Of a DNA stretch of 64,000 nt, positions 21,401-64,000 are shown piece by piece. The stretch covers positions 5,208,001 to 5,272,000 of the forward strand of contig OZ176056.1 in NCBI GenBank assembly GCA_964247055.1, read 5' to 3'. Positions within the stretch are counted from its first letter, which is position 1. Each line of letters begins with the position of its first letter. The notes below the pieces were generated by a model, which was not told the DNA's origin, searched no databases, and saw nothing but the letters and a program-made list of their open reading frames with translations. The stretch comes from Paragordius varius. Its lineage: Eukaryota; Animalia; Nematomorpha. The translations under genes were made by a program, and so were the position numbers.

Positions 21401-22198
21401 AAACCCGCCTACCCCCATGACTGGGAACGTTAATGAAATAAAACAGGTATTATATATCATTGTGCCCACATTTTCAATGATTTAGGTTAAAAAAATGTTT
21501 TTCAAAAAACAATATATAATTTTAAAGTCTAATATAAAATATGTTTTCTGTCTTAGATACAAATTGGTAGAGATGACTGCCTTAGCCTCTTTATATGATA
21601 TGTTTGTTACTAACATATATATAAATTTAATACCCTGAAAATAATTTCCCTTAATACTTTGTACCTTTTTAAGGTTTTGGTTTTTACGATTAAATAGTCA
21701 TTTTTTAGCAAAGCTTTGGCCATTGCTATTATTAAATTTATATTAATTTTTATCTAGATTGATATTTGGAAGCGATATTTACGATGGGAACGTAACAATC
21801 CACTAAATTACGAGGATAAAAATATGGTTATAAAACGAGGTTTAAATTTAATCATCAATAATCGTTTAAATTAATATTTTTCCCTTGCCATTAAATTTTT
21901 TTATTAAATTTTTATTTCAATATAGTGGTTTATGCTTATGACCAAGCCTTGTTAGTTATGAGTTATAGTTCTGAATTATGGCTCGAAGCTGGTCTCTATC
22001 TCAGCAAAATGGGCCAAGAGTTTATTGAACAAGGGGTATAAATTTTTTATCATCATTTTTCTATTTATTTAATTTTTGGCATCAAAAGTTACTTCCGTTA
22101 CCCTTACACATTATTACATTTGTTTCTAATTTATATTAAAATCAACTCTTTATTATTTTTAATACTATATCTTTTAAAATAATTAAAGCAACACGATT

Positions 22199-22253
<55 letters not shown>

Positions 22254-31686: not shown

Positions 31687-32109
31687 TGGGGGAGGGGGGT
31701 AAGGGACAATAAAATGATCCACATATGTGGATTATTTCAAAACGTTATTTAATAGATATAATTTTAAAGGAATTTTAAAACGGTGCATTCATAGTAATAT
31801 ATTGTACAAATGAGGGTAAAATAAATATAAAAAAAATTTTTTAAATGGCATTTTACGGGGAGAGCGGGTAAAAAGAGGGACTAAATCAAAAAGGCGAGAG
31901 GACTATGTTCGGCCCGATCAAAAATAAGTAAACAAAAATCATATTTGAAATTGAATGGTCCAACACCTTCTCCAAAAAATTGTCTCAAACACACGATTTT
32001 TGTGGACCTCTGTTTTCAAAAACGAACCCGTTTTTCACACGGGGTGGGTCCAAACTGGAGGCATATTTCAAAAAAAGTGGAAGAATAAATAAATAATCGG
32101 TATTTATTT

Positions 32110-34759: not shown

Positions 34760-37700
34760 TTATTATTACATTACATGTTTTCACTCGTGAGAGCGGTCAT
34801 GTTATACAACCTGTCTCGCCATAAAACTCTATCTATGACGTCCTCTGCATTAAGCTCGTATTCTGCTAGCTCTCTTTTTACTGTATCTATCCATTTTGTT
34901 TTAGGCCGCTTACGTCCTCGTTTTCCTTCAACTATATGACTATCTATTATTTTTGCAATATAATTAGAATCTCTCCTTTCAATGTGCCCGAACCAACGTA
35001 GCCTATTTTTGACATTTTTTCCACTATAGGTTTAATATTAGTGCTCCCACGAATAAATCTATTCTCAATTCTGTCCTTTCTTGTTACCCCACACATCATT
35101 CTGAGCATTTTCATTTCAGTCACGTTAAAATGTCTTTCTTCGGATTTTTTGACACCCCACGTCTGTGAATTATACATCATTGAGGGCTGGACAACTGAAC
35201 TGTAAATCTTACCTTTCACTCTAACATCAATATTTCGATCGCATAATACGCTCGAAATTTTCTTCCAATTTACCCAGCTGCTCTTTATTCTTAAATTAAT
35301 ATCGTCAGTTAACGAACCATCTGCACTTAACATAGCTCCCAGATATTTGCAACTTTCTTTACCCTTCAGAACCCAACTATCATCAACTACCATTTCATGT
35401 TGTGGACCCCCAAAAGTAATAAGTTCGGTTTTTGCTTTGTTTACTTTCATACCATATTGATCCGACATAACAACCCATCTGTTTACCGTTCGCTTTAACT
35501 CAATTAATGAATCAGACAAGATGATTATGTCATCTGCATACATTAAGTACCATCCTGAACTCACATTAACAACCTTGGCTACCTCGTCCATACAAATTAT
35601 AAAAAATAAGGGGCTGAGTGATGAGCCTTGGTAGACTCCATGCTTTATTGAAAAGGGCTCTGATAAACCTTGTGGAGTTTTAATCCTGGAGGTGTGTGAT
35701 TCGTACTTTATTTGTAACAACTTAATATAACTTTCTGGCACCTTTTTACGACGGAGACTCCACCAAATAGTTTCTCTAGGAATCCTGTCAAACGCCTTCT
35801 CCATATCAATCAAAACCCCGTGTAATTCTTTCTTTTTTTCAATGTGTTTTTCAATCAACCTCCTAACCGCATGTATAGGATCTACTGTTGACTTTCCTGG
35901 CATGAAACCAAATTGATTTCCTTCTATAGATATCATTTTCCTGATTCTCTTTTCAATAATTTTTTCAAACAATTTCATAGTGTGCGACATAAGTTTTATC
36001 CCTCTATAGTTACTACATTCATTTATATCACCTTTTCCTTTAAATAAAGGCACAATTAAACTTTCCTTCCATTCAACCGGGATTTCATACGTTGAAACAA
36101 CTTTATTAAATACACGCTCCAATCCAGAATTTCCAAGCACTTTCCAACAATTTATATTTATGTCGTCCGATCCTACAGCTTTGTTGTTTGGCATTTCTAA
36201 CAAATTAGATTCTACTTCCTTTTGTGTAATTGCTTCTATTGGTCTATCAGTAGCTTCAACTGTATTTGGCAAAAATATCTCGCCTACCCCTTCATCTAAA
36301 CTCACAAAGTACTCTTTCCATCTTTTTAATATTTCTACATTTTCGCACAGCAAGATTCCATCTTTTCCTTTTATTGCAGTCGCATAACCTGGCAAATCCA
36401 TCCTGCGTTTATTCCTTTGCTGCGCAACTTTATACACTTTGTTTAAACCTTGCTTACTATTTAACTCATCATAAAATTAATTCATTTTTTCTTTCTTAAC
36501 CTGGCCGACTAATTTTTTCAATTCCTTATTTAAACTTTTATACTTATCTCTATCATCATCATTCCTTGTATGTCTCCATTTGTCAAAAGCCTTACCTTTT
36601 TCTCGTGACATCAATATTATTCTTTCATCGTAAAGCCAAGCCTCTCTGTATACTTGAGATTTTCCGCCTCTTAATCCACAAACTAGAGTTCCTGCCTTTT
36701 TGATTAACTGACTTACTTTATCCCAATCACCATTTAACCCACCATCCTCGGATAACCGTATTTCTTTTATAAAAGCCTGCCTTTTTTCGGATAATTTCTC
36801 CCACTTAATACTTTTTAATCTCTTTGAATAAGAACCACTTTGTTTAGACTTTTATTTCACGGAAAATTTACAAATAAGTAAATTATGTTGCGAACTAACC
36901 TCTAAGTTTGGCACGACCTTACAATCTATTACAAGCTTCAATAAGTCTCTTGGAACATGTATAAAATCTATTTGAGATTTGTTTATGCCGCTCTTAAAAG
37001 TTACTAGATGACTCTCTCTTTTTTCGAAAAACGTGTTCGCTATCGCCAAATTGTGAGATTGTGCAAATCTGAGCAAATTAATTCCTTCCTCGTTTCTTTC
37101 TCCATAAGAATGTCCCCCGTGCCATATTTCAAAAGATTCCCTTTTTGAACCAATATGACCATTAAAATCCCCACATAAAAACTTGACTCTGAGCTGAGGG
37201 AGAGCGACTATTTTTTCATCTAGAGTCTCGTAAAATTGCTCCTTTTCTTGTTTCGGTAAACCTATTTGCGGGGCATATATACTAAATACCGTTATGACCT
37301 CGTTTCCTACCAAAATATCTAAATTCATGATTCGGTTGTTATAGCGTCTTACTTCTTTAACCTGATTGGACAACTTGGGATTAATGATTATTGCCACTCC
37401 ATTTCGTCCGCCACTTTCACCTGAGTAATATAGTCGATAATTCTCTTCCAAAGTCCTTGCTCCGTTTCCGCGGTAACGAGTCTCTTGTAATGCCAAAATA
37501 TCAATATGTTTAACTTTCATTATTCTCACAATATCATTTAACTTACTTTTCAATGAACCAACATTTAAACTAGCAAAATACAGGCATCCCGTATTCCTTT
37601 GCATTCTCTTTGTATTATTGGCCACAACACCAAAACCGCGGCTGGCCAGGCCTGACCGGTTATTACTATACACATCAATATTCATTTGACAGCTTTAAAC

Positions 37701-38487: not shown

Positions 38488-39675
38488 GAGCCTGCGAAAC
38501 CGCTATTTGAAATTTGGCATTAACATAATTGTGATATTCTATGATGGCGCATTTTTCAGGGCGTGTACGGCTAAATTAAGGGCTAATTTAAAAAAACCGC
38601 ACGATGTAAATTTTTGCCTTGTTGCGGGTGATATTTTTAGCAGCTATTGAGCTCATATGGCCTGATAAGTTTTCTGAAATTTAACCCCAAAGGCACGCAA
38701 AAACGATATGACGGGTCGGTTTTTAGCGGTTATCTCCCTACCCAGCAGCTATCATTAAAGAAACGCCTGACTAAAATTTTTGGCTTTTAACAGGGATTAG
38801 CTGGAATCCTTATCGAATCCCTACGGTTTCATACCTTGTGCGAAAAATACATTCAAAAAATATTTTGATGAACTTAGTTTTTTTGAAAAAAGTGCTATTT
38901 TACGGAGGTAGCGGGTATAAAGAGGGCCTAAATCATAAAAGCGGGCCGACTATGTTCGGCGCGATCAAAAATAAGTAAACAAAAATCATATTTGAAATTG
39001 AATGGCCCAACACGTTCTCCGGAAAATTGTCTCAAAGATACCCGTTTTTTACACGGGGTGGGCCCGAACTGGGGGCCTATTTCAAAAAAATGGCGAAGCT
39101 ATTGTCGAGGCATTCATTGATCATTATATTTTTTCGATGTTTGGATTTGATTGGGTTCACCGGTTTTCCGGAAACAGATCACAAAGTTATATGAAAAATC
39201 AGTTTTTAGCGGGTAGCTCCTTACCCAGCAGCTATCATCAAATAAACGGTGGACTAAAATTTTTGCTTTTTAACAGGGAATACGTGGAATCCATATTGAA
39301 TTTTTACGGTCTCTTACCTAGGGCGAAAAATCGATTTAAAAAAATATTTATGTGGACTTTGTTTTTTGAAAAAGGTGGCATTTTACGGGGGGAGCGGGTA
39401 AAAAGAGGGCCTAAATCAAAGAAGTGACTCGACTATGTTCAGCGCAATCGTAAATAAGTAAACAAAAATCATATTTGAAATTGAATGGTCCAACACGTTC
39501 TCCGGAAAATTGTCTCAACCCGTTTTTCATACGGGGTGGGCCCGAACTGGGGGCCTATTTCAAAAAAAGGGCGAAGCTATTGTCGGGGCATTCATTAATG
39601 ATTATATTTTTTCGAAGTTTGGATTTGATTGGGTCTACCGGTTTTCCTGTACCAGATCATAAAGCCAGCATTTTC
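38488..39675. repeat. Dispersed repeat family with internal ~120-250-bp subrepeats, copy 1 (possibly Helitron/Helentron-derived)
   Basis: Starts gagcctgcgaa(a/g)ccg and ends aagccagcattttc. The block gatcaaaaataagtaaacaaaaatcatatttgaaattgaatggtccaacac recurs at ~31920, ~38965, ~39450 and ~42230. Superfamily is inferred only. Confidence 0.6.
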
Positions 39676-40725
39676 AATTTTTATAAATATATAGATTATT
39701 CACCTAAGTACGTTTATATTTATTTTACTAAATTGTTTTATTGGCTTTAAAAAAAGTGGGGGCATCATAAAAGTTTTATACCCTGGGCGCCGCAAATGCT
39801 CGGTACGCCACTGCCTAAACTCACTATTAAGATCTTAATATTCATATTTTATTCAGTAAAATAAACTTCTAAATCAAAATAAAACCAAAAATATTGTTTT
39901 TTATTTTGGCATTTTTTTGTCATCTGGTTTATGAGTAAAAAATTTATACTGTTTTATTTTGGATTCTTACATGATTAGGAATTATTAAGTATATAATTTA
40001 TGGAAAATATGATTTAAAAGTAGTGGAATGTCAACCAACAATCCTTACAATTTCCTTTAACAAGTCTGTTTTATGACAAATTAATATTTGGATTGGGATT
40101 TGTACGGTTGTTGGTTGATATTCCACTAATTTTCAAACCTATTTTTCATAAATTATATACTAAATAATTCCTAATCATGTAAGAATCCAAAATAAAACAG
40201 TATAATTATTAAAACACTCATATACTAGATGACAAAAAAATGCAAAAATAAAAAACAATATTTTTGGTTTTATTTTTATATAGAAGTTTATTTCCTGAAT
40301 AAAATATAGATGTTTTTTAATAGTGAGATTAGGTAGAAATAATTGATAAAAATTATTAATATAGTTTCATTTTTTTTCTTTTAAGTGTGATAAAAGAACG
40401 CCATCTTTTGACCTGTAATTTTATAGAAACCCTATTTAGGCTATTTATATATTGAAAATATCTCCTAAAATGATATTAAACGATAATATTTCTAATTTTA
40501 TCATTATTTTTTGAATTATCCTTAATTATCCTTAATTTTCACTTTTTGCCCGATTTCGGTTTTCTCTCAATATTTCAAAACTAGGTTGTCAACAAATAAA
40601 AATTTTTGCAACAAATGAATACGCTGGTCATAAGCTATCTCATGAAAAAAAATTTTTTCGTTAAATCAAAATGACCCTCTTTTTTGCATACAGTGAATAT
40701 ATATGGCTTACACACAATCGGATTG

Positions 40726-44639: not shown

Positions 44640-45481
44640 TAACTTATATATCAAAATAAAACCAAAAAAATATTGTTTTATATTTTTACATTTTTTTGTC
44701 ATCTGGTTTATGAATGTATAAAAAATTTATACTCTTTTATTTTGAATTCCTACATGAGTGCGAATTAAAGCATATAATTTATATAAAATATGATTTAAAA
44801 GTAGTGTAATATCAACCAACAATCCGTGCAAATCCCTGTAACAAGTCTGTTTTATGACAAATTAATATTTTTAATGGGATTTGCACGGATTGTTAGTTGA
44901 TATTCTACTACTTTTAAATCATATTTTGTATAAATATACTTTTAATTCGCACTCATGTAAAATTCCAAAACAAGACAGTATAATTTTTTTATACACTCAT
45001 TAACCAGATGACAAAAAATTGTAATATAATACAATATTTGGTTTTATATAAGTTTTTTTTACCGAATAAAATATGTATGTTAAGATTTTAATAGTGAGTT
45101 TAGCTAGTTAATAATTAAAAAAAAATATTTTAATAAAGTTTCACCATTTTTTTATCTTTTAAGTGTGTTAAAAAAAACGCCATCTTTTGAGCTTAAATAT
45201 TATAGAAATCCTAACTATATGATTTTAGGCTATTTATATAGTGAAAATATATCCTAAAATGATAATAAACCATAATACTCAAATTTTATCATTATTTTTG
45301 AATTATCCTTAATTAACCTTTATTTTCACTTTTTGCCCGATTTCGATTCCTCTCAATATTTCAAAAACTAGGTTGTTAACAAATAATAATTTTTGCGGCA
45401 AATGAATTTACTGGTCATAAGCTATCTCATGAAAAAAAAATTTTCGTTAAATCAAAATAGCCCTGTTTTTTACACTTAGTG
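44640..45481. mobile_element. Palindromic CACT-family element, copy C (left end truncated)
   Basis: Centre at ~44835-44877; right end tttttacacttagtg followed by TA. Confidence 0.75.
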
Positions 45482-46362
45482 TATCAAATAAACGGCGTAC
45501 TATCCAACAATCCCAACTCCAAGTGACATTGGTTAAAACAAATCGATATTTAGATTTGGATTTGTAAGGAATAATTGATATTCCTACTTGTAAATCCTAG
45601 TTTGTATTAATTATACTTTGTGATACCCGGAAGATTCCAAAAAGGAACTGTTATATCACTCATAAACCAGTTAAAAAAGAGCAAAAATAATAATCAATAG
45701 TTTATTATTTTTATATTGATTTATAACTTTTGTTACATAAAATATGGTAAGATTAGAATAGTGAGTTTAGTTAATAAAAAATGATTCCAATAAAGTTTTA
45801 TAACAATTGTTTATTTATTAAGAAAGAAAACCACTCTTTTTGATCTGAGTTCTCTGATAATATTATAATAGTTCTTAATATCTCAAGTTTTATCATTATA
45901 TCTTTAAGTACCATTCTTTTTCAATTTTTGTCCAATTTTAATTTTCTTTCAATAATTCAAAAACTAGGTCGTACACATAAAATTTTATTCTGGCAACGAT
46001 TTCGGTGTTAAAATCTCTTGAAAAAAGATATTTGTTAAAAAAATTGACCTCTTGAACACACAGTGTAATATTTTTCCGTTACTAATTTATTATATAACCT
46101 TTAAAGTAACCCTCTCAAAAAATTATTAAATAATATGCGGTGAATTCGCGACTTGTCGATTTGCAATCCCTAATCGGATTCTTAATAACTCTGAAGTATT
46201 AGTTAACTAGAATGTGTTTTTGTCAATATTTGCCAAAAAATCTACTGCTTCAATATATCATGTCACTGTAGTTATTGATGATTGTAGTTACAATCCTTTT
46301 TTTCTAAAAATTGTTGAAAATCAAAGATCTTGGCCAAAAAATTAATTTAAAAAACTAAATAC

Positions 46363-49300
46363 CAGAGATAGTATTTGGTTTTCCACTTTCTTTAGATTCC
46401 ATCCCAGATCCGTCATTTGTTACTTCTGGAGATTTTAAAATACACAATATATATTTAATATAAGTTAAATTAAATTGCTAAATCGGTCATAAATGTAGTT
46501 TTTATAATTTTAATACAACCCACTATATCTCTCAATCGGAAAATATATAATAACTCAAAATTTAGTCGGCTATTTTTGACGAAAAATTTTGTATTAGCTT
46601 TTACAGCAAGCACGGAAATTAATATTAGAGAAGCAATATTCTTTGATTACATCAAGGCTATAAATGGTTAGGAGATCGCATGCGTATGGACTGCGTTTTT
46701 AATATCTCTATGTAGAGCAGTCCCTTAATATTGAACCATATTTTTAAAATAATATAAAAATACATTTAAATAACTTTTAGAAAATTAGCTATTTTTACAC
46801 AATATATTAATAAACCATTGATAAAATATTTAAACCTTTTGTCATTATGTAATATATATAATACCAGTTGCAGTGCTTTTGTCTTCAAGCTCACCACTGG
46901 ATTCTGTGCTATGGTCTTCTGGCTCACCACTGGATTCTCTCTTATTTTCTTTTGGCACTAAAGTAATTATTTTTGAATGAAGTCTTAAATCAATATATAC
47001 CATTTATAATTCAAATTCACCCTTAAACAAAAATTTTCCTTTAAGTAATTTAAATTTTTTTTCAAACAATTCGATTTCACCAACAACAAATTCACCCTAA
47101 AAATTAATTATGTTTTTTCTATCTAATATAATTCATCATTATTATGAATAATATCTTTATGGCTTAGATTATTATTTTATCCGTATTATGTCATTTACAA
47201 ACAAAATTTCATTTTTTAAAAATATAAAAAAATTTGTTAATTTTTAAACTTTAAGAAATGATTTTTTTTAGGGCGAATTTGAATTGTTAGAGGGGGAATT
47301 TAAATTAGGACCTGCCTCTAAGGATTCAATTAAGCAATTACGCATATTTAAGATATAGATCGTTGAATATTCTTGTATATTTGTATACTTTTTGATAAGA
47401 AAACACCCGATTCGCATGTTAAAATTGAAGAAAATAATTTAAAACAAAACATAAAACTGTGTCTTGTTTACGTTTAAAAGATGATAGCATGTGATTGGTA
47501 ATAAATACAAATTTTTTACGAAATAATAATAAATTGTCTAAAAACTTCTCTATTTAGCTCACATTTAAATAACTAAATACTTGTGTGCAAAATTTATTAC
47601 TGAAATTTTTTTAGGATAGCTTATAACCAACAAATTCATTTTCAGCAAATTTTATTTGTTCACCACCTAGTTTTTGAAATATATAGAGATGATCCAAACG
47701 GCCAAAATAGGGATTAACAATCTTAACTAACTAAAATTCTTTCTATCAGACATTTGCAATTTATAAATAGCGTAAAATCGTGTTTTTTCTTTATTCTACA
47801 CAAATTTTTTTTATAAAATTATTAAAATATTTTTATTTATTTAACTAAATTCATTTTTGAGATCTCAATATTCATTTAATAATTTGCATATCAAGGTAAA
47901 TTAATTAAATAGTATTTGTTATATTTGTCATCTGGTTTAAGAGTGTATAATAAATTTAATATTGTCTTTTGAAATACATGAGCATTAAGTATATTAAAAT
48001 ACAAAAGTTAGAAGTAGAGGCGTACTATCCAACAATCCCAACTCCAAGTGACATTGGTTAAATCAAACTGATATTTAGATTTGGATTTGTAGGGAATAAT
48101 TGATATTCCTACTTGTAAATCCCAGTTTGTATTAATTATACTTTGTGATCGGAAGATTCCAAAAAGGTACTGTTATATAACTCATAAACCAGTTAAAAAA
48201 GTGCAAAAATAATAATCAATAGTTTATTATTTTTATATTGATTTATAACTTTTACATAAAATATGGTAAGATTAGAATTGTGAGTTTAGTTAATAAAAAA
48301 TGATTCCAATAAAGTATTATAACAATTGTTTATTTATTAAGAAAGAAAACCACTCTTTTTGATCTGAGTTCTCTGATAATATTATAATAGTTCTTAATAT
48401 CTCAAGTTTTATCATTATATCTTTAAGTACCATTCCTTTTCAATTTTTGTCCAATTTTAATTTTCTTTCAATACTTCAAAAACTAGGTCGTACACATAAA
48501 ATTTTATTCTGGCAACGATTTCGGTGTTGAAATCTCTTGAAAAAAGATATTTGTTAAAAAAATTGACCTCTTGAACACACAGTGTAATATTTCCGTTACT
48601 AATTTATTATATAACCTATAAAGTAACCCTCTCAAAAAATTATTAAATAATATGCGGTGAATTCGCGACTTTTCGATTTGCAAGCCCTAATCGGATTCTT
48701 AATAACTCTGAAGTATTAGTTAACTAGAATGTGTTTTTGTCAATATTTACCAAAAAATCTACTGCTTCAATATATCATGTCACTGTAATTATTGATGATT
48801 GTAGTTACAAACCTTTGTTTCTAAAGAAAATTGTTGAAAATCAAAGATCTTGGCCAAAAAAATTAATTTAAAAAACTAAATACCAGAGATAGTATTTGGT
48901 TTTCCACTTTCTTTAGATTCCATCCCAGATCCGTCATTTGTTACTTCTGGAGATTTTAAAATACACAATATATATTTAATATAAGTTAAATTAAATTGCT
49001 AAATCGGTCATAAATGTAGTTTTTATAATTTTAATACAACCCACTATATCTCTCAATCGGAAAATTTATAATAACTCAAAATTATTTTTATTAGTCGGCT
49101 ATTTTTGACGAAAAATTTTGTATTAGCTTTTACAGCAAGCACGGAAATTATTATTAGAGAAGCAATATTCTTTGATTACATCCAGGCTATAAATGGTTAA
49201 GAGATCGGCGTATGGACTGCGTTTTTAATATCTCTATGTAGAGCAGTCCTTTAATATTGAACCATATTTTTAAAATAATATAAAAATACATTTAAATAAC

Positions 49301-52300
49301 TTTTAGAAAATTAGCTATTTTTACACAATATATTAATAAACCATTGATAAAATATTTAAACCTTTTGTCATTATGTAATATATATAATACCAGTTGCAGT
49401 GCTTTTGTCTTCAAGCTCACCATTGGATTCTGTGCTATGGTCTTCTGGCTCACCACTGGATTCTCTCTTATTTTCTTTTGGCACTAAAGTAATTATTTTT
49501 GAATGAAGTCTTAAATCAATATATACCATTTATAATTCGAATTCACCCTTAAACAATTCAAATTTTCCTTTAAGTAATTTAAATTTATTTTCAAACAATT
49601 CGATTTCACCAACAACAAATTCACCCTAAAAATTAATTATGTTTTTTCTGGCTAATATAATTCATCATTAATATGAATTTTATCTTTATGGCTTAGATTA
49701 TTATTTTATCCGTATTATGTCAATTATAAACAAATTTTTAAAATATAAAAAAATTTGTTAATTTTTAATTAAGAAATGATTTATTTTAGGGCGAATTTGA
49801 ATTGTTAGAGGGGGAATTTAAATTAGGACCTGCCTCTAAGGATTCATTTAAGCAATTACGCATATTTAAGATAAATAGATCGTTGAATATTCTTGTATAT
49901 TTGTATACTTTTTGATAAGATAACACACGATTCGCATGTTAAAATTGAAGAAAATAATTTAAAACAAAACATAAAACTGTGTCTTGTTTACATTTAAAAG
50001 ATGATAGCATGTGATTGGTAATAAATACAAATTTTTTACGAAATATTAATAAATTGTCTAAAAACTTCTATATTTAGCTCACATTTAAATAACTAAATAC
50101 TTGTGTGCAAAATTTATTACTGAAATTTTTTTAGGATAGCTTATAACCAGCAAATTCATTTTCAGCAAATTTTATTTGTTCACCACCTGGTTTTTGAAAT
50201 ATATAGAGATGATCCAAACGGCCGAAATAGGGATTAACAATCTTAACTAACTAAAATTCTTTTTATCAGACATTTGCAATTTATAAATAGCGTAAAATCG
50301 TGTTTTTTCTTTATTATACACAAATTTTTTTTATAAAATTATTAAAATATTTTTATTTATTTAACTAAATTCATTTTTGAGATCTCAATATTCATTTAAT
50401 AATTTGCATATCAAGGTAAATTAATTAAATAGTATTTGTTATATTTGTCATCTGGTTTAAGAGTGTATAATAAATTTAATATTGTCTTTTGAAATACATG
50501 AGCATTAAGTATATTAAAATACAAAAGTTAGAAGTAGAGGCGTACTATCCAACAATCCCAACTCCAAGTGACATTGGTTAAATCAAACTGATATTTAGAT
50601 TTGGATTTGTAGGGAATAATTGATATTCCTACTTGTAAATCCCAGTTTGTATTAATTATACTTTGTGATCGGAAGATTCCAAAAAGGTACTGTTATATCA
50701 CTCATAAACCAGTTAAAAAAGTGCAAAAATAATAATCAATAGTTTATTATTTTTATATTGATTTATAACTTTTACATAAAATATGGTAAGATTAGAATAG
50801 TGAGTTTAGTTAATAAAAAATGATTCCAATAAAGTATTATAACAATTGTTTATTTATTAAGAAAGAAAACCACTCTTTTTGATCTGAGTTCTCTGATAAT
50901 ATTATAATAGTTCTTAATATCTCAAGTTTTATCATTATATCTTTAAGTACCATTCCTTTTCAATTTTTGTCCAATTTTAATTTTCTTTCAATACTTCAAA
51001 AACTAGGTCGTACACATAAAATTTTATTCTGGCAACGATTTCGGTGTTAAAATCTCTTGAACAAAGATATTTGTTAAAAAAATTGACCTCTTGAACACAC
51101 AATGTAATATTTTTCCGTTACTAATTTATTATAAATACTATAAAGTAACCCTCTCAAAAAATTATTAAATAATATGCGGTGAATTCGCGACTTTTCGATT
51201 TGCAATCCCTAATCGGATTCTTAATAACTCTGAAGTATTAGTTAACTAGAATGTGTTTTTGTCAATATTTGCCAAAAAATCTACTGCTTCAATATATCAT
51301 GTCACTGTAATTATTAATGATTGTAGTACAATCCTTTTTTTCTAAAGAAAATTGTTGAAAATCAAAGATCTTGGCCAAAAAAATTAATTTAAAAAACTAA
51401 ATACCAGATATAGTATTTGGTTTTCCACTTTCTTTAGATTCCATCCCAGATCCATCATTTGTTACTTCTGGAGATTATAAAATACATAATATATAATTAA
51501 TATAAGTTAAATAATATTGCTAAATCGGTCATAAATGTAGTTTTTATAATTTTAATACAACCCACTATATCTCTCAATCGGAAAATATATAATAACTCAA
51601 AATTATTTTTATTAGTCGGCTATTTTTGACGAAAAATTTCGTATTAGCTTTTACAGCAAGACGGAAATTTTTATTAGAGAAGGAATATTCTTTGATTACA
51701 TCAAGGCTATAGATGGTTAGGAGATCGCATGCGGACTATGGACTGCGTTTTTAATATCTCTATGTAGAGCAGTCCCTTAATATTGAACCATATTTTTAAA
51801 ATAATATAAAAATACATTTAAACATCTTTTAGAAAATTAGCTATTTTTACATTGAAATATATTAATAAACTATTGATAAAATATTTATACCTTTTGTCAT
51901 TATGTAATATATATAAGTTGCAGTGCTTTTGTCTTCAAGCTCACCACTGGATTCTGTGCTATGGTTATCTGGCTCACCACTGGATTCTCTCTTATTTTCT
52001 TTTGACACTAAAGCAATTATTTTTGAATGAAGTCTTAAATAATTCAAATTCACCCTTAAACAATTCAAATTTTCCTTTAAACAATTTAGATTTATTATCA
52101 AACAATTTGATTTCACCAACAACAAATTCACCCTAATAATTAATTATGTTTTTTCTGGCTAATATAATTCATCATTAATATGAATTATATTTTTATGGCT
52201 TAGTTTATTATTTTATCCGTATTATGTCAATTACAAACAAAATTTCATTTTTTAAAAATATAAAAAAAATTAGTTAATTTTTAAACTTTAAAAGATGATT

Positions 52301-55300
52301 TATTTTAGGGCGAATTTGAATTGGGTGAATTTGAATTAGGACCTGCCTCTAAGTATTCAATTAAGCAATTACGCATATTTAAGATAAATAGGTCGTTGAA
52401 TATTCTTGTATATTTGTATACTTTTTGATAAGAAAACACCCGATTCGGCATGTTAAAATTGAAGAAAATAATTAAAACAAAACATAAAACTGTATTTACG
52501 TTTAATAGATGATAGGATGTGTAGTAATAAATACAAATTTTTTACCAATTTATAATATGAAATTGTAACTTCTCTATTTAGCTCATATTTAACTAAAAAT
52601 ACTTGTGTGCAAAAATTTTTAATGAAATTTCTTTTAGGATAGCTTATAACCAGCAAATTCATTTTCAGCAAATTTTATTTGTTTACCATATATATAGAGA
52701 TGATCCAAACGGCCAAAATAAGGATTAACAATCTTGACTAACTAAAATTGTTCCTTATTACCAGACATTTGCAATTTATAAATAGCGTAAAATCGTGTTT
52801 TTTCTTTAATATACACAAATTTTTATAAAATTATTATAATATTTTTATTTATTTACTAACTAAAATCATTTTTGAAATCTCAATATTCATATTAATAACT
52901 TGCAAATCAAGTTAAATATATTAAATAGTATTTGTTATATTTGTCATCTGGTTTAAGAGTGTATAATAAATTTAATATTGTCTTTTGAAATACATGAGCA
53001 TTAAGTATATTAAAATACAAAAGTTAAAAGTAGAGACGTACTATCCAACAATCCCAACTCCAAGTGACATTGGTTAAAACAAATTGATATTTAGATTTGG
53101 ATTTGTAGGGAATAATTGATATTCCTACTTGTAAATCCTAGTTTGTATTAATTATACTTTGTGATACCCAAAAGATTCCAAAAAGAAACTGTTATATCAC
53201 TTATAAACCAGTTAAAAAAAGTGCAAAAATAATAATCTTTATTAATTTTATATTGATTTATAAATTTTTTTAAATAAAATATTGTGAGATTGTGAATTTA
53301 TTTAGTAAAAAATGATTCCAAAAAAGTTTCATAACAATTGTTTATTTATTAAGAAAGAACACCACGATTTTTTGATCTGAAAAGTCTGATAATATTACAA
53401 TAATTCTTAATATCTCAAGCTTTATCATTATATCTTTAAGTACCATTATTTTTCACTTTTTGTCCAATTTTAATATCAATACTTCAAAAACTAGGTCGTA
53501 AACATAAAATTTTATTCTGGCCACGACTTCGGTGTTAAAATCTTTTAAAAAAAATATTTGTTAAAAAAATTGACCTCTTGAACACAAACTGTAATATTTT
53601 TCCGTTACTAATTTATTTTATAAACTATAAAGTAACCCACTCAAAAAATTATTAAAATAATATGCGGTGTATCGTGACTTTTCGATTTGCAATCCCTAAT
53701 CGGATTATTAAAAATCTGAAGTATTAGTTAACTAATAGAATGTGTTTTTGTCAATATTTACCAAAAAATCTACAGCTTTAATATATCATGTCATTGTAAT
53801 TATTGATAATTATAGTTAAAATCCTTTTTTTCTAAAGTAAATTATCGAAAATCAAAGATCTTGGCCAAAAAATTAATTTAAAAAACTAAATACCAGAGAT
53901 AGTATTCGGTTTTCCACTTTCTTTATATTCCATCCCAGATCCATCATTTGTTACTTCTGGAGATTCAAAAATACATAATATATATTTAATATAAGTAAAT
54001 TATATTGCTAAATCGGTCATAAATGTAGTTTTTATAATATTATTAGAACCCACTATAGCTCTCAATCGGAAAATATATAATAACTTAAAATTATTTTTAT
54101 TAGTCGGCTATTTTTGACGAAAAATTTCATAGCTTTTACAGCAAGCACGGAAATTTTTTTTAGAGATGCAATTATCTTTGATTACATCAAGGCTATAGAA
54201 ATGGTTAGGAGATCGCATGCGGACTATGGACTGCGTTTTTAATATCTCTATGTAGAGCAGTCCCTTAATATTGAACCATATTTTTAAAATAATATAAAAA
54301 TACATTTAAATATCTTTTAGGAAATTAGATTTTTACATTGAAAAAAATTAATAAACCATTGACAAAATATTTAAACCTTTTGTCATTATGTAATATATAA
54401 AATACCAGTTGCAGTACTTTTGTCTCCAAGCTCACCACTGCATTCTGTGCTATGGTCTTCTTGCTCACCACTGGATTCTCTCTTATTTTCTTTTGACACT
54501 AAAGTAATTATTTTTAAATGAAGTCTTAAATCAATATATACCATTTATATTTCAAATTCACCCTCAAACAATTTAAATTTTCCTTTAAGTAATATAATTT
54601 TATTTTCAAACAATTCGAATTCACCAACAACAAATTCACCCTAATAATTAATTATGTTTTTTCTGGCTATTATAATTCATCATTAATATGAATTCTATTT
54701 TTATGGCTTAGTTCATTATTTTATCCGTATTGTGTCAATTAAAAACAAAATTTCATTTTTAAAAAAATAAAAAAATTAGTTGTGTAAACTTTATAATATG
54801 ATTTATTTTAGGGTCAATTTAAATTGGGTGAATTTGAATTAGGACCAGGATTCAATTAAGCAATTACGCATATTTAAGATAAATAGATCGTTGAATATTC
54901 TTGTATATTATGAGGAAACACCCGATTCGCATGTTAAAATTGAAGAAAATAATTAAAAACAAAACATAAAACTGTGTCTTGTTTAGGTTTAAAAGATGAT
55001 AGCATGTGATTGGTAATAAATACAAATTTTTACGAAATAATAATAAATTGTACAAAAACTTCTCTATTTACCTCACATTTAAATAACTAAATACTTGTGT
55101 GCGAAATTTATTACTGAAATTTTTTTAGGATAGCTTATAACCAGCAAATTCATTTTCAACAAATTTTATTTGTTTATTACCTGGTTTTTGAATATATAGA
55201 GATGATCCAAACGGCCAAAATAAGGATTAACAATCTTGACTAACTAAAATTGTTACCTTTTTATCCATTTGCAATTTATAAATAGTGTAAAATCCTGTTT

Positions 55301-58300
55301 TTTCTTTATTATACACAATTTTTTTTTTATAAAATTATTAAAATATTTTTATTTATAAACAAAATTTATTTTTGATTTCAATATTCATGTTAATAACTTG
55401 CAAATCAAGGTAAATTAATTAAATAGTATTTGTTATATTTGTCTGGTTTAAAAGTTGATAATAAATTTACTATTGTCTTTTGAAATACATGAGCATTAAG
55501 TATATTAAAATACAAAAGTTAGAATTAAAGGCGTACTATCCAACACTCCTAACGCCAAGGGACATTGGTTAAAACAAATTATTATTTTGGATTTGTAGGG
55601 GATAATTGATATTCCTACTTGTAAATCCTAGTTTGTATTAATTATACTTTGTGATACCCAAAAGATTCCAAAAAGAAACTGTTATATCACTTATAAACCA
55701 GTTAAAAAAGTGCAAAAATAATAATCTTTATTAATTTTATATTGATTTATAAATTTTTATTAAATAAAATATTGTGAGATTAGAAAAGTGAATTTAGTTA
55801 GTAAAAAATGATTCCAAAAAAGTTTTATAACAATTGTTTTTTTATTAAGAAAGAAAACCACGATTTTTTGATCTGAAAAGTCTGATAATATTATAATAAT
55901 TCTTAATATCTCAAGCTTTATCATTATATCTTTAAGTACCATTAGTTTTCACTTTTTGTCCAATTTTAATATCAATACTTCAAAAACTAGGTCGTAAACA
56001 TAAAATTTTATTCTGGCAACGAAATCTTTAAAAAAAAATATTTAAAAATTGACCTCTTGAACACACACTGTAATATTTTTCCGTTACTAATTTATTTATT
56101 TAAACTATAAAGTAACCCTCTCAAAAAATTATTAAATAATATGCGGTGTATCGCGACTTTTCGATTTGAAATCCCTAATCGGATTCTTAAAAATCTGAAG
56201 TATTAGTTAACTACTAGAATGTGTTTTTGTCAATATTTACCAAAAAATATACAGCTTTAATATATCATGTCATTGTAATTATTGATAATAATAGTTAAAA
56301 TCCTTTTTTTCTAAAGAAAATTGTTGAAAATCAAAGATCTTGGCCAAAAAATTAACTTAAAAAACTAAATACCAGAGATAGTATTCGGTTTTACACTTTC
56401 TTTATATTCCATCCCAGATCCATCATTTGTTACTTCTGGAGATTTTAAAATACATAATATATATTTAATATAAGTAAATTATATTGCTAAATCGGTCATA
56501 AATGTAGTTTTTATAATTTTAATACAACCCACTATATCTCTCAATCGGAAAATATATAATAACTCAAAGTTATTTTTATTAGTCGGCTATTTTTGACGAA
56601 AAATTTCGTATTAGCTTTTGCAGCAAGCACGGAAATTTTTATTAGAGAAGCAATATTCTTTGATTACATCAAGGCTATAGAAATGGTTAGGAGATCGCAT
56701 GCGGATTATGGACTGCGTTTTTAATATCTCTATGTAGAGCATTCCCTTAATATTGAACCATATTTAAAATACATTTATCTTTTAGAAAATTAGATTTTTA
56801 CATTGAAAAAAATTAATAAACCATTGACAAAATATTTGAACCTTTTGTCATTATGTAATATATAAAATACCAGTTGCAGTACTTTTGTCTCCAAGCTCAC
56901 CACTGGATTCTGTGCTATGGTCTTCTGGCTCACCACTGGATTCTCTCTTATTTTCTTTTGACACTAATAATTATTTTTTAATGAAGTCTTATATCAATAT
57001 ACTATTTATAATTCAGATTCACTCTTGAACAATTCAAATTTTCCTTTTAACAATTTAAATTTGTTCTTAAACAATTCACACCAACAACAAATTCACCCTA
57101 AAAATAAATTATGTTTTTTCGGGCTAATATAATTCATGATTAATATGAATTATATATTATTATGGCTTAGTTTCTTTTTTTATCCGTATTATGTCAATTA
57201 CAAACATTATTTCATTTTAAAAAAATAGAAAAAAATCAGGTAATATTTAAACTTTAAAAGATGATGTCTTTTAGGGCGTTAATCGAATTGTTCGAGAGTG
57301 AATTTGAAAGTACAAACTGCCTTTAAATATCCAAATAGGCAATTACACATATTTAAGATAAATAGGTAGTTAAATATTCTTATAAATATATATCATTTCC
57401 ACTTCAAGAGTGTCCTTGAACACTTCAAGTTGGTCCTTGAACATTACAAGTTGGTCCTTGAACAATTCAACTTGGTCCTTCTACATAACAAGTTGGTCCT
57501 TGAACATTTCAAGTTAGTGAACACTTTTGGTCCTTAAAATTTATTAATCTTGATTTAACCATAATTTTTGCATTTATTATTTTATTTTATTATTTATTAA
57601 AATAATTTTCTTAATTTATTATATATTTATTCATTTAAAAATAAAAATTATTAAAAAACCACTTTTTTGTTTCAAACTATTTATTCAATTGAACAAAATT
57701 TTTAATGAAAAATTTTAATTAATAACCTAGAAAACTTTTATATTTTTTTCATTTCAGGTTAAAATCTTATAAATATCCAAAATAATTTTAAGAAATTAAT
57801 AAAGTAATACTGTTTCTCAAAGAATAAAAGTTGATATCTATGTTAAATAATAGAAAATAGGTTAAAAAAATAAATGTATTATTTACGATTTGGTTAAAAT
57901 AAAAACTAAAAACAAAACAAAAAAGTTAAATGACCAACTTGAAATGTTCAAGGACTAACTTGAAATGTTCAAGGACAAACTTGAAGTGTTAAAGTTCACT
58001 CTTGAGGTGCAAATGATATATTTTATTTTTTGATAAGAAAATACCCGATTCATGTTAAAATTGAAGGAGAAAATAATTAAAAACAAAACATAAAACTGTG
58101 TCTTGTTTACGTTAAAAAGTTGATAGGATGTGATTGGTAATAAATACAAATTTTTTACCAAATAATTATATGAAATTGAAACATCTCTATTTAGCTCACA
58201 TTTAAAGAACTAAATACTTGTGTTATAAATTTATAACTGAAATTTCTTTTAGGATAGCTTATAATCAGCAAATTCATATCCCTAAATTTTATATGTTTAC

Positions 58301-61300
58301 CACCTGGTTTTTGAAATATACAGAGATGATCCAAACGGCCAAAACGTGATTAAGGATAATTAAACAAAAATCTTGACAAACTATAATTGTTACCTTTTTA
58401 TCAGATATTTACAATTTATAAATAGCCTAAAATCGTGTTTTTTCTAACTAATTTCATTTTTAGGATGTCTTCATATTATATAACCTGCATATCAAGGTAA
58501 ATTAATCAATTAGCATTTGTTGTATTTATGATCTGGTTTAAGAGTGTAAATAAATATACTTTTGTCTTTTGAAATACATGAGCATTAAGTATATTAAAAT
58601 ACAAAAGTTAGAATTAAAGGCGTATTATCCAACAATCCTAACTTTAATTGACATTGGTTAAAACAAATTATTATTTTGGATTTGTAGGGAATAATTGATA
58701 TTCCTACTTGTAAATCCTAGTTTGTATTAATTATACTTTGTGATACCCGGAAGATTCCAAAAAGAAACTGTTATATCACTTATAAACCAGTTAAAAAAGT
58801 GCAAAAATAATAACCTTTATTAATTTATATTGATTTATAATTTTTTTAAATAAAATATTGTGAGATTAGAAAAGTGAATTTAGTTGGTAAAAAATGATTC
58901 CAAAAAAGTTTCATAACAATTGTTTATTTATTAAGAAAGAAAACCACGATTTTTTGATCTGAAAAGTATGATAATATTATAATAATTCTTAATATCTCAA
59001 GCTTTATCATTATATCTTTAAGTACCATTATTTTTCACTTTTTGTCCAATTTTAATATCAATACTTCAAAAACTAGGTCGTAAACATAAAATTTTATTCT
59101 GGCAACGACTTCGGTGTTAAAATCTTTAAAAAAAATATTTGTTAAAAAAATTGACCTCTTGAACACACACTGTAATATTTTTCCGTTACTAATTTATTTT
59201 ATAAACTATAAAGTAACCCTCTCCAAAAATTATTAAATAATATGCGGTGTATCGCGACTTTTCGATTTGCAATCCCTAATGGGATTCTTAAAAATTAGAA
59301 GTATTAGTTAACTACTAGAATGTGTTTTTGTCAATATTTACAAAAAAATCTACAGCTTCAATATATCATGTCATTGTAATTATTGATAATTATAGTTAAA
59401 ATCCTTTTTTTCTAAAGAAAATTGTTGAAAATCAAAGATCTTGGCCAAAAAATTAATTTAAAAAACTGAATACCAGAGATAGTATTTGGTTTTCCACTTT
59501 CTTTAGATTCCATCCCAGATCCGTCATTTGTTACTTCTGGAGATTTTGAAATACATAATATATAATTAATATAAGTTAAATTATATTGCTAAATCGGTCA
59601 TAAATGTAGTTTTTATAATTTTAATACAACCCACTATATCTCTCAATCGGAAAATATATAATAACTCAAAATTATTTTTTTTAGTCGGCTATTTTTGACG
59701 AAAAATTTCGTATTAGCTTTTACAGCAAGCACGGAAATTTTTATTAAAGAAGCAATATTTTTTGATTACATCAAGGCTATAAATGGTTAGGAGATCGCAT
59801 GCGTATGGACTGCGTTTTTAATATCTCTATGTAGAGCAGTTCCTTAATATTAAACCATATTTTTAAAATATAAAAATACATTTAAATATCTTTTAGAAAA
59901 TTAGCTATTTTTACATAATATATTAATAAACCATTGATAAAATATTTAAACCTTTTGTCATTATGTAATATATATAATACCAGTTGCAGTGCTTTTGTCT
60001 TTAAGCTCACCACTGGATTCTGTGCTATGGTTATCTGCACCACTGGATTCTCTCTTATTTTCTTTTGACACTAAAGCAATTATTTTTGAATGAAGTCTTA
60101 AATAATTCAAATTCACCCTTAAACAATTCAAATTTTCCTTTAAACAATTTAGATTTATTATCAAACAATTTGATTTCACCAACAACAAATTCACCCTAAT
60201 AATTAATTATGTTTTTTCTGGCTAATATAATTCATCATTAATATGAATTATATTTTTATGGCTTAGTTTATTATTTTATCCGTATTATGTCAATTACAAA
60301 CAAAATTTCATTTTTTAAAAATATAAAAAAAATTAGTTAATTTTTAAACTTTAAAAGATGATTTATTTTAGGGCGAATTTGAATTGGGTGAATTTGAATT
60401 AGGACCTGCCTCTAAGTATTCAATTAAGCAATTACGCATATTTAAGATAAATAGGTCGTTAAATATTTTTGTATATTTGTATACTTTTTGATGAGAAAAC
60501 ACCCGATTCGACATGTTAAAATTGAAGAAAATAATTAAAAACAAAACATAAAACTGTGTCTTGTTTACGTTATAAAGATGATAGGATGTGATTGGTAATA
60601 AATACAAATTTTTACCAAATAATAATATGAAATTGTCTAAAAACTTTTCTATTAGCTCACATTTAAATAACTAAATACTTGTGTGCAAAATTTAATGAAA
60701 TTTCTTTTAGGATAGCTTACACTGGACAACAAATTTTTCTGCCACTCGAGTTTTTTGCATTTTCTGATATTTAGTATCATATTAAGAGTAAATCTGAAAT
60801 AAAAATAACTCGTTGGAAGAATTTTTTTATAATTTTATTTTTTTGATTATGCGCCCTCTTTATCAAAATTTTACTAAAAAATATTTTTCTTTGAAAATAT
60901 ACAAGTAATGACCATTTGTAATATATCATACGAAAGAGTAATAAAAACTCTATAAAATGCATACTAATATGTATTATCAGTTAATATTGGACACAAAAAG
61001 CGACAAACGCGCGAAGCGAGAGCATTTTTTTTAATTATTATATTTTTAATAGGATGATAGCTCGAACTTTGTTTAGATAGTGATGAATGTCCAAAAAAGA
61101 TAACACAAGAAAGTTTTGATTAAAACATTTTTTATTGCTTCACTCAAAACAGCCATTTTTAAGTTTTTTGTTTTTTAAAAATTACCCTCTCATCAATATA
61201 AATTTATTTTATTTACGAGGCTGATAATTTCGAAATTTTAAAGATAAAAACAAAGTTTAGGTATTTTTTATCTTTTATAGCCATTATGTAATAAATTTAG

Positions 61301-63420
61301 AGTTATAACTATGCAATCTAGTATCCACTAGGTAAAATATTTATTATAATAATAATTTTTATTAAAAAAGCAAACCAAAAGCTTTTTCAAAACATTTTTT
61401 TTAAATTAAATACTAATATAACCCTAATAATTATATTAAAATAATTAATATGATTTTCAAATTAGTTTGTTTGTGAAAATCTTGATTTATTTAAGGATTG
61501 AAAATTCCGATCATTTAAATCCAAATAACTTTTACATTCGATTGATTTAAATGACTTACTACCATTTAAAAGATGCAGTTTTTTGCGCTCTTTCGAATGA
61601 TATAAAATACATGGCTTCATATCTAACACTTTTAATTTTCGAAATTTTGAGTTTAATGTTAAATCGGGGCCAAAAATTATCGATAAACTCTAATATATAA
61701 AAATTGCATGCTAGACCAATTTTCTTTTCAGATATAATAATTATGTACTTTAATGAAATAAATTTTGAATTTACAAGAATGGCAGTTAAAAAAAGTTAAA
61801 ATTTGTTGTCTAGTGTTATAACCAGCAAATTCATTTTCCGCAAATTTTATTTGTTTACCACCTGGTTTTTAAAAATTTAAACGAAACGTGATTAAGGATA
61901 ATTAAACAATAATCTTGACTAATAAAATTGTTACCTTTTTATAGACATTTACAATTTATAAATAGCGTAAATCGTGTTTTTTCTTTATCATACACAATTT
62001 TTTTTTATAAAATTATTAAAATATTTTATTTATTTACTGACAAAATTCATTTTTGAGATCTCAATATTCATATTATATAACTTGCATAAGGTAAATTAAT
62101 TAAATAGTATTTGTATATTTGACATCTGGTTTAAGAGTGTATAATAAATATACTATTGTCTTTTGAAATACATGATCATCAATTATATTAAAATACAAAA
62201 CAGAAGTAAAGATGTACTATCCAACAATCCTCACTCAAAGTGACAAGTTTGTTTAAAATGATATTTAGATTTGGATATATACGGAATATTAATTGATATC
62301 CAGTACTTGTAAATCCTAGTTTGTATTTATTTTACTTTGTAAATTCTCGCTCATGAAAGATTCCAAAAAGCAACAGTTATATCACTCATAAACCAGATGA
62401 AAAACAGTTAAAAAAATATACAATATTATATTAATCTTATATTGGTTAATATTACCTATCTTTACTGTATAAAATATGTTAAAATTTAAAGAGTGAGTTT
62501 AGCAAGAAAAATGATTCTAATAAAGTTTTATAACAATTGTTTATTTATTAAGTATGTAAAAACACGATTTTTGTAATGTGTTCTCTAATATATATTATAA
62601 TAATTCTTAATATCTCAAGTTTTATCATAAATCTTTAAGTAGCATTATTTTTCACTTTTTGTCCAATTTTAATTTTCTATTAATACTTCAAAAACTAGGT
62701 ATCTGGCAATAAATTTTATTATCTTTTGAAAATATTGGTTAAAATAACCCTCTTTTTTACACACAATGTAATATTTTTTCTTAACTAATTTATTATATAA
62801 ACTCTAAAGTAACCATCTCAAAAATATTATTATATAATATGTGGTGACCATAAATTATTACATATTTCCAGATTGTATATCATAATTTTGTGTTTAAAAT
62901 AAAAATCGCATTTAAAAGATAAAATTTGAAGCTATTTTAAATTATTTAGGTATGGTAATCATGTATCAGATATTACATCAAAATAAATTTAATTCAAAAA
63001 AATGATTAATATTTCATTATCCGAAACTTCTCAAAATTCAAATATAAAGTAGCCTACTAAACATTATGAGTTTAGAGCTGCACCGCTAATGATTCCTACA
63101 AATTTTAACATAATTAATGCGCCGTCAAAATTCAATGTGTAATTTGGCGATATAAAAGTTTCTAAGTATTATTTAATATAGAATGTTTTTTGAATTTAAA
63201 ATATATTAGATAAAAGTAGTGCCTCCACATATCTCTAATGATAAATAGTAAAAACTCTACGCCTAATACACTGTAATTATTGATGATTTTAGTTGCAATC
63301 CTTTTTTTAAAGAAAATTTGTTAAAAGATCATGGCAAATAAATCAATTAAAAAAACTAACCAATGATAGTATTTGATTTTCCACTTTCTCTAGATTCCAT
63401 CCCAGATCCGTTTGTTACTT
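46363..63420 (-). CDS. Partial gene: repeated phase-1 exon pairs encoding an acidic Ser-Gly-rich (proteoglycan/mucin-like) module; 5' end beyond the window, 3' end not located
   Basis: Exon Y (63 nt): 46363-46425, 48884-48946, 51405-51467, 53894-53956, 56373-56435, 59474-59536 and 63361-63420 (60 nt). Exon X (93 nt): 46865-46956 (92 nt), 49391-49483, 51891-52007 (117 nt, alternative donor), 54406-54498, 56871-56963 and 59981-60070 (90 nt). All are flanked by AG/GT on the minus strand, are phase 1-1, and have no stops. They are much more GC-rich than the rest of the unit. Confidence 0.65.
57388..58021. mobile_element. 634-bp TIR element with 20-bp subrepeats (ttcaagttggtccttgaaca), inserted in array unit 5 only
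   Basis: Ends atatatcatttccacttcaagagtg and cactcttgaggtgcaaatgatatat are inverted. There are about 5 20-mers on the left arm and about 3 inverted on the right. The other units show the empty site. Confidence 0.85.
60720..61815. mobile_element. CACTA/EnSpm-like non-autonomous element, 1096 bp
   Basis: 17-bp TIR CACT(G/A)GACAACAAATTT and 3-bp TSD TTA. The other units show the empty site gcttataacc. Confidence 0.8.
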
Positions 63421-64000
63421 CTGAAGATTCTAAAATACATAATATATAATTAATATTCATAAATTAAATTATAAAATCGGTGATTAATGTGGTTTTTATA
63501 ATTTTCATACAACATATGAGATCTCTCAATTGGAAAATATAGAACAACTCAAAATAATTTTTGGTAATCGGCTATTGTTGAGAATATTTTGTATAACCTT
63601 TCAGAACAAGTAAGTAAAGTGTGTGAACAATCAGATTTTTTTTGAAAATAATCCAAATTTGAAAAAAAAATTAATAAATTGGCTACTTTTGTTGAAAAAG
63701 CTTTCATATATATATATATATATGAAGTAAAGTGTAATGATCCATCAGATTGAAATAATAAAAAATATTATAATCAAATTTTATATTTTAATATAATTAA
63801 ACTTTCATCAAAATATAATTATATGAAGTAAAATTTAAAAGTCATTTTTTATATTCAAGCAAACTTTACAATTGATGGTTATAATCAATTTTTTGAAAGA
63901 GAATCTTATGTTATTTGTTTTATAAACGGTGTTTGACATTATTGTCATCTAAGTTTACTGTAAAATTAATTTTTTGGATTTGGACACTACTGCTCTTATT

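Follow-up and report, generated by a model that had tools for sequence, protein, structure and literature searches.

Does a tandem array of kilobase-sized units in the genome of the horsehair worm Paragordius varius conceal the exons of a gene? The array, whose unit measures ~2.5 kb, lies within a window of 64,000 nucleotides of contig OZ176056.1, in a very AT-rich genome. A first-pass annotation had proposed that each unit carries two minus-strand segments bounded by AG...GT, X of 93 nt and Y of 63 nt, both of phase 1-1, and their coordinates were reproduced by BLAST and direct reading. The explanation that we favour, plausible if a little short of probable, is that a stretch of an unannotated, lineage-specific gene on the minus strand was amplified here as an array of exon pairs. 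The gene itself is unproven, and a sugar-chain function for its product even more so.

A young array with two exon-like segments per unit

The array spans ~18 kb (about 45351-63601; repeat families D1-D20). Repeat-family search, MAFFT alignment of the units and edge alignment resolve it into six full units (46363-63360) and two partial ones, one at the low end (45351-46362) and a diverged one at the high end (63361-63601). Unit starts are spaced 2479-2529 nt apart in the repeat-family search, and 3101 and ~3887 nt apart at units that bear insertions: unit 5 contains a foldback or MITE-like insertion (57385-58024) with 96-nt inverted arms made of 21-nt repeats, and unit 6 alone contains an insertion of ~1.1 kb (60732-61811). 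The array is young, with about 90-97% identity between copies. Each unit also includes a dispersed repeat that itself contains tandem repeats of 21 nt (46993-47345 in unit 1; TRF, repeat family D9 and read depth), and which reaches a depth of about 10^5 in DNA-like sequencing runs, where the baseline is about 10^2-10^3. Its low edge was set by loose read ends and its high edge is approximate; as the low edge lies 36 nt from X, X is ruled out as a part of this high-copy repeat. Rfam and tRNA scans of the window gave no matches.

On the minus strand, X is present in six copies (46865-46957, 49391-49483, 51915-52007, 54406-54498, 56871-56963 and 59981-60070) and Y in seven (46363-46425, 48884-48946, 51405-51467, 53894-53956, 56373-56435, 59474-59536 and 63361-63420). 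The borders read tttag/TG...CTG/gtatta in the first X and ctccag/AA...CTG/gtattt in the first Y, which would be the last copy in transcript order; no acceptor was identified downstream of it. AG...GT borders are intact in 12 of the 13 copies, the exception being the third X, whose donor G/GTAT is gone through a 5-nt deletion. The sixth X (90 nt) and the seventh Y (60 nt) have each lost 3 nt in frame, as had been claimed, and this last Y does retain both splice sites within the diverged seventh unit. X is absent from that unit, in which homology to the repeat unit ends ~180 nt upstream of Y, at ~63601. Between X and Y lies a putative short intron (46426-46864 in unit 1) that is conserved between units as well as the exons are, and between Y and X a putative long one (46958-48883 in unit 1), which is indel-rich and has 25% variable columns; the small indels described for the introns indeed number 108 across units.

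None of the 13 copies contains a stop or a frameshift, and all are open in one common phase. The lengths of 93 and 63 nt, and the variants of 90 and 60 nt, are all divisible by three and share the same phase, and a 33-nt internal duplication inside X is likewise in frame. The array thus has kilobase-scale units with complete splice-bounded segments, and gain or loss of a unit would keep the reading frame, as in a coding exon-pair macrosatellite. Besides X and Y, other islands of 38-45% GC are present in every unit.

Gene-like signals and the comparison between units

The splice sites and the codon-position composition of X and Y resemble those of real genes in this genome. The donors (G/GTATT) and acceptors (TTTAG/ and TCCAG/) match those of the neighbouring gene, named CSTF3 by Pfam Suf, with donors GTATAA, GTATCC and GTAAAA and acceptors TTTTAG and AATTAG at the junctions that we chose as most plausible. 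GC content in the proposed frame is 48, 50 and 26% at codon positions one to three, with 38% G at the first position (chi-square p=0.026), and this pattern is the same in X and Y taken separately and recurs in the CSTF3 exons, with 45, 33 and 32%. When the six frames are scored with a phase model trained on CSTF3, the proposed one comes out on top for the first and fourth X and the first and fifth Y, by small margins. In ~23 kb of the CSTF3 antisense strand, three single AG-3n-GTA open segments and no pairs occur, so that about 0.03 pairs would be expected per 2.5-kb unit. Finally, the seventh Y, the oldest copy and part of the edge unit, is 93.3% identical to the consensus where its homologous flanks are 82.5% identical (Fisher p=0.043); all four of its mismatches are amino-acid changes. 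Because of this splice-site type, the codon-position composition, the low chance rate of pairs and the conservation of the seventh Y, there is moderate support for X and Y being, or deriving from, genuine phase 1-1 exons. Open reading frames were rejected as coding evidence, X being stop-free in five of six frames; Y is open in three of six.

The comparison between units speaks otherwise. Variable columns make up 14 of 156 in the exons and 45 of 447 in the short intron (p=0.76), and after correction for base composition 16.6 variable exon columns are expected where 14 are observed. Indel density does not differ between the exons and the adjacent short intron (p=0.54), with only two indels falling within exons, both of 3 nt. 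Exon changes are distributed 10:4:0 over nonsynonymous, synonymous and stop, where neutrality predicts proportions of 0.75, 0.20 and 0.05, and in the unit alignment several intron stretches are conserved as well as the exons or better. The claim that constraint acts on the frame therefore lacks statistical support, as substitutions, indels and the ratio of nonsynonymous to synonymous changes are all indistinguishable from the short intron or from neutrality and stops would not be expected in any case, and frame-preserving evolution fails statistically as an argument for the gene. Indel and stop spectra alike in exons and introns had been named beforehand as a result that would refute it; the outcome comes near to this, although the array, at about 90-97% identity, is too young for the test to have power. 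No hint of purifying selection emerges between units, nor could one be expected of copies this young. The preserved frame, the intact splice sites and the absence of stops are uninformative on selection because in a young array they are inherited from one ancestor. At present, the value of this locus is mainly cautionary: in a young array, none of these three features is evidence of selection.

Searches and rival explanations

In five small RNA-labelled runs carrying the same species label, the share of sampled words from the locus was 0.00, an estimated nine or so of these words lying in exons. The search of sequencing runs for locus words also returned six runs of unknown kind. Four runs, aligned to 5991 letters of the locus, cover the introns throughout and pile up enormously on transposons, and therefore behave like DNA; no X-Y or Y-X splice joint is among the 15 joints listed for the DNA-like runs, for which 419 more joints exist. 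A protein word search with Y-X-Y (73 aa) yielded no candidate of 40-128 aa, and exact searches of metagenome contigs with both spliced-junction sequences returned no matches. A HMMER profile of six X peptides found no credible match among 1.84 billion representative proteins; its single match, a bacterial beta-propeller repeat, is spurious, matching E-x-x-G-E-L-K-x-x-S-T-A-T only. The minus strand was scanned for flanking exons at 27.1-34.9 kb and 42.4-46.4 kb, on either side of the LINE-bearing 34.9-42.4 kb, and at 60.1-64 kb. These parts of the window yielded neither a start exon nor a signal peptide, neither a terminal exon nor a stop, nor any segment of similar composition, and 63421-64000 holds nothing exon-like; any 5' end of the gene falls beyond position 64000, outside the window.

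How, then, is the array best explained? These searches, which found neither RNA nor homologues nor flanking exons, would be expected of a non-coding macrosatellite, that is, of ordinary repeat-rich intergenic or intronic DNA in which purine-rich, moderately GC-rich islands mimic exons, and in which phase and lengths were inherited from one chance ancestor. Such an origin, which we consider somewhat unlikely, also agrees with exons that cannot be told from the adjacent intron by their substitutions or indels, with the neutral ratio of changes, with intron stretches that are no less conserved, with an X that is open in almost every frame and with the further GC islands of every unit. It does not readily account for an X-Y-like pair that chance would so rarely produce in a unit, nor for a codon-position GC pattern that fits the one frame open in both segments, a seventh Y better preserved than its flanks, and splice sites of the type used by the genome.

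A second rival is that the exons were genuine in the ancestor and that their amplified copies are unused, either as spare pseudo-exons in the inflated intron of a real gene that employs one or a few of the copies, or as a recently dead pseudogene. This we hold to be improbable. While symmetric exons of the same phase are exactly what permits the inclusion of all copies, and no single-copy 'master' pair stands apart from the others, the change between copies is neutral in pattern, one X has already lost its donor, the RNA-labelled runs carry no signal of expression, and no exon can be recognised downstream of the intron in which the array ends. The presence of both splice sites in nearly all copies, free of stops and frameshifts, also counts against disuse, though it is to be expected at the age of the array.

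The amplification of a stretch of a lineage-specific gene has to be set against both. In this favoured explanation, a stretch of a gene with two short symmetric (phase 1-1) exons would have been amplified by unequal exchange into the young 2.5-kb array, each unit gained adding one more 52-residue module; as the length of either exon is divisible by three and their phase is the same, the frame would stay intact. The third X, with its donor lost, would be skipped, and the encoded protein would be disordered and strongly acidic, with six or more repeated modules. A much more specific proposal is that of a working horsehair-worm gene encoding a secreted, polyanionic, lineage-specific polymer with GAG chains or dense phosphate, its length set by the number of 2.5-kb units and tuned by skipping of symmetric exons. 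Such a gene would be an invertebrate counterpart of the size polymorphism of human LPA, found in a parasite about whose secreted molecules hardly anything is known; this we regard as quite unlikely.

The predicted module and known systems

The consensus translation agrees with the proposed X-Y module of 52 residues with four Ser-Gly dipeptides, and reads V-SKENKRESSGEPEDHSTESSGELEDKSTAT-E-VTNDGSGMESKESGKPNTIS, with P in place of S at the start in two copies. It contains 21% Ser, 19% Glu and 10% each of Lys, Thr and Gly, lacks Cys and aromatic residues, and has a net charge of about -7. All four dipeptides (in ESSGEPED, ESSGELED, NDGSGME and KESGK) have acidic residues within about eight residues, the spacing by which putative chondroitin attachment sites have been recognised (PMC2063922). 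The module also contains five S-x-E phosphorylation motifs (SKE, SGE, STE, SGE and SKE), no less frequent than the dipeptides. Secreted acidic phosphoproteins carry such S-x-E sites for the Golgi casein kinase (Fam20C), and the disordered, Ser/Glu-rich and strongly acidic predicted module resembles them by motif only, with no homology. The first-pass reading of the product as proteoglycan- or mucin-like therefore divides: the Ser-Gly motifs near acidic residues, on which the proposed GAG attachment is solely based, are consistent with a proteoglycan, and a secreted phosphoprotein would fit equally well, whereas a mucin with PTS domains does not fit, as Ser, Thr and Pro make up 18 of 52 residues against 20 of 52 for Glu, Lys and Gly, Pro occurs only twice, and the repeats are spread over separate small exons. 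That X and Y are spliced at all, the number of copies used, secretion, and any modification by GAG chains or phosphate are inferred.

Micro-exon genes (MEGs) of Schistosoma have short symmetric exons, mostly of 36 nt or less and each unique, and their products are lineage-specific and presumed to be secreted. As in these flatworm genes, the exons proposed here are short, symmetric and hidden in AT-rich, repeat-filled DNA, with room for exon skipping. They are, however, 63 and 93 nt in length, longer than the symmetric exons of at most 36 nt that make up the bulk of a micro-exon gene's coding sequence, and they occur in tandem 2.5-kb copies, so that diversity would come from unit number instead.

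In nematodes, CPG-1 to CPG-9, the core proteins of chondroitin proteoglycans, are ecdysozoan and lineage-specific, with no homologues in vertebrates; they have signal peptides, are rich in Ser-Gly flanked by acidic residues, and were found by mass spectrometry of their modified serines (PMC2063922). The predicted module shares with them Ser-Gly flanked by acidic residues, at four per module. It shares no sequence similarity, is predicted from DNA, and belongs to repeated exon-pair units, as which the CPGs have not been described (PMC2063922). If X and Y are spliced as proposed, the Nematomorpha, whose annotation misses small-exon genes, would gain a candidate for a secreted molecule of the matrix or the host interface.

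In architecture, the closest likeness is to the kringle IV type 2 copy-number repeat of human LPA, which consists of 5.5-kb units with two exons each (PMC4378929, PMC11515395). In both, a kilobase-scale unit contains an exon pair that keeps the frame, unit number sets, or here would set, the number of modules, and the copies are nearly alike including their introns. Yet the LPA modules are folded, Cys-bonded kringles with clear homologues, and their expression and copy-number variation are proven, whereas the module predicted here is a low-complexity acidic one of 52 residues for which the homologue search was negative. Spliced as proposed, the array would be a clear non-vertebrate case of protein length set by the copy number of a multi-exon repeat.

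Anatomy of the tandem array

One unit was read on the minus strand, and its two exon-like segments, X and Y, were BLASTed against the window, with all copies and their flanks listed. A repeat search of the window places the tandem array at ~45351 to 63601 with a spacing of ~2.5 kb. It holds six copies of X (93 nt, one of 90 nt) and seven of Y (63 nt, one of 60 nt), here called X1-X6 and Y1-Y7 from low to high coordinates. With a slash at each border, X reads ..ctttag/TG...ACTG/gtatt and Y reads ..ctccag/AA...TCTG/gtatt. The first-pass annotation had counted 12 of 13 copies as intact and derived a 52-residue module from X and Y together; our count agrees, the exception being X3, where a 5-nt deletion has taken G/GTAT, and the module is identical to our consensus. 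Unit 7, at the diverged edge, is only partial: its homology begins ~180 nt upstream of Y7, and no X was found in it.

Since a high-copy dispersed repeat begins 36 nt from X in every unit, and since unit 5 carries a foldback insertion and unit 6 insertions of ~1.1 kb and 0.18 kb, describing the unit as TE-laden was fair. Tandem repeats of 21 nt (unit about CTTAAACAATTCAAATTTACC) build an element family at 57385-58024, 46993-47345 and equivalent positions, one member of which, a foldback insertion, has inverted arms of 96 nt; the member adjoining each X has a very high genomic copy number (depth ~10^5 versus ~10^2-10^3). Furthermore, units 3 and 6, 8 kb apart, share 300 nt at 100% identity (51975-52274 versus 60038-60337) as well as an ED-to-DN change in X, and units 1/2 and units 4/5 are paired in a comparable way. 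The pairing points to higher-order duplication or to recent gene conversion among the units.

Exon-like character judged against CSTF3

The GC content of the window (~24%) is consistent with that of a published nematomorph genome, which has 26.9% GC and 64% repeats (10.1101/2023.06.26.546503), and mobile elements are its GC-richer parts. As a source of real exons and introns of P. varius we used the gene for CSTF3/Suf (cleavage stimulation factor 77 kDa; 13069-27066, + strand), with recognisable exons at 13069-13170, 13311-13400, 21928-22035, 22282-22398, 22466-22555, 22704-22841, 23505-23606, 23689-23784, 24347-24394, 24766-24867 and, as the final one recognised, 26971-27066. GC islands below 13 kb may include additional 5' exons. 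Its introns range from 67 nt to >8 kb, one of them enclosing a whole gypsy-type LTR element (~14-21.5 kb; integrase, RNase H and protease matches). Between CSTF3 and the array lies a LINE (34947-37685) with ORFs for an apurinic-type endonuclease and a reverse transcriptase; like the putative X/Y gene, it is on the minus strand. A further repeat occurs twice on the + strand (31945-32088 and 39475-39750), its ORF starting MKLNGPT(P/R)SP(K/E)NCL; a 141-aa ORF adjoining one such copy (39002-39427) had no Pfam match.

The ancestral X and Y segments look moderately like exons. Their splice sites are of the same kind as those of CSTF3 (donors GTATAA, GTATCC and GTAAAA; acceptors TTTTAG and AATTAG), the latter taken from the junctions judged most plausible. 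In the proposed frame, GC at codon positions 1/2/3 is 48/50/26%, with 38% G at position 1 (p=0.026 overall), a pattern present in X and Y separately; the CSTF3 exons give 45/33/32%. A position-specific phase model trained on 361 CSTF3 codons ranked this frame top of six for X1, X4, Y1 and Y5, by small margins, Y7 being an exception. Moreover, scanning ~23 kb antisense to CSTF3 for AG-(3n, 45-150 nt, GC >=0.35, open)-GTA with a pyrimidine-rich stretch upstream returned three segments, no two of them in the same phase and <=1 kb apart, from which roughly 0.03 X/Y-like pairs per unit are expected by chance. Identity to the consensus is 93.3% for Y7, the oldest copy, and 82.5% for its flanks over 234 aligned positions (p=0.043); all four differences in Y7 change an amino acid.

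Variation between units and the coding status of the array

The first-pass annotation had proposed constraint on frame, and this did not rise above chance. With the six full units aligned by MAFFT, variable columns number 9/93 in X, 5/63 in Y, 45/447 in the short intron between them and 483/1926 in the long intron, with 2, 0, 12 and 96 small indels, respectively. Between exons and short intron there is no difference in substitutions (p=0.76; 14 variable exon columns versus 16.6 expected once the greater mutability of G/C sites is allowed for) or in indel density (p=0.54); for indels, a hint emerges only when the exons are set against the pooled introns (p=0.064). At the short-intron rate, 2.4 frame-breaking indels are expected in the 156 exon columns; the exons contain none, and one donor is lost to such an indel. 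Substitutions in the exons number 14 (10 nonsynonymous, 4 synonymous, no stops), in agreement with the 0.75/0.20/0.05 predicted by the intron mutation spectrum, and the pattern is therefore neutral; zero stops has a probability of 0.48. Five of six frames are free of stops in X and three of six in Y, and several intron stretches are conserved as well as the exons or better. The array, at ~90-97% identity, is too young for such tests of constraint, and what resembled constraint was inherited from a single ancestral unit.

How, then, should the array be read? That X and Y are exons of a live gene, with several units spliced in, is the reading we tentatively hold, at slightly short of an even chance. 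A non-coding array, to which we give a lesser though real chance, has the neutral exon changes on its side and the codon-position pattern and rarity of chance pairs against it. It is rather unlikely that the exons are genuine and their amplified copies unused or dead; the lost donor of X3 speaks for this reading, and the intact splice sites of the other 12 copies and the open frame of all 13 speak against it, although both are expected at this age. The six sequencing runs that contain the locus behave like DNA, with introns covered and 10^5-fold depth on transposons, and no splice joint was among the joints listed. Five small RNA-labelled runs under the same species label contained 0.00 of 55 sampled words, of which an estimated nine or so lie in exons. 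Spliced X/Y junction strings were absent from metagenome contigs, and protein searches with the X/Y peptides found no relative; their sole match, a bacterial protein, was rejected as spurious. If the gene is real, its design is that of the human LPA KIV-2 repeat (PMC4378929, PMC11515395), and it would add to this already known type rather than represent a novel one.

Predicted product and extent of the putative gene

The module consists of 21% Ser, 19% Glu and 10% each of Lys, Thr and Gly, without Cys or aromatic residues, and carries a net charge of ~-7; the predicted peptide is therefore almost certainly disordered. This composition is not mucin-like, contrary to one earlier suggestion. Putative chondroitin sites in nematodes have been recognised by Ser-Gly with acidic residues near, together with a signal peptide (PMC2063922). 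By sequence, the Ser-Gly dipeptides of the module do have such acidic neighbours. The secretory-pathway casein kinase has S-x-E as its consensus, and given five such motifs per module, a putative secreted phosphoprotein would be an equally good guess.

The scanned parts of the window contain no 5' exon, signal peptide, terminal exon or stop; the 5' end of the putative gene must lie beyond 64000, and its 3' end, if any, is between 27 and 45 kb among the transposons. In four of four runs, depth over Y and ~180 nt upstream is ~5x that of neighbouring unit parts (46400-46599, 48800-49199), with a summed contig depth of 1736-1980 versus ~250-350 in the run labelled X1. Edge unit 7 retains this very stretch, and given the depth over it, further Y-type copies may exist beyond 64000 or elsewhere in the genome.
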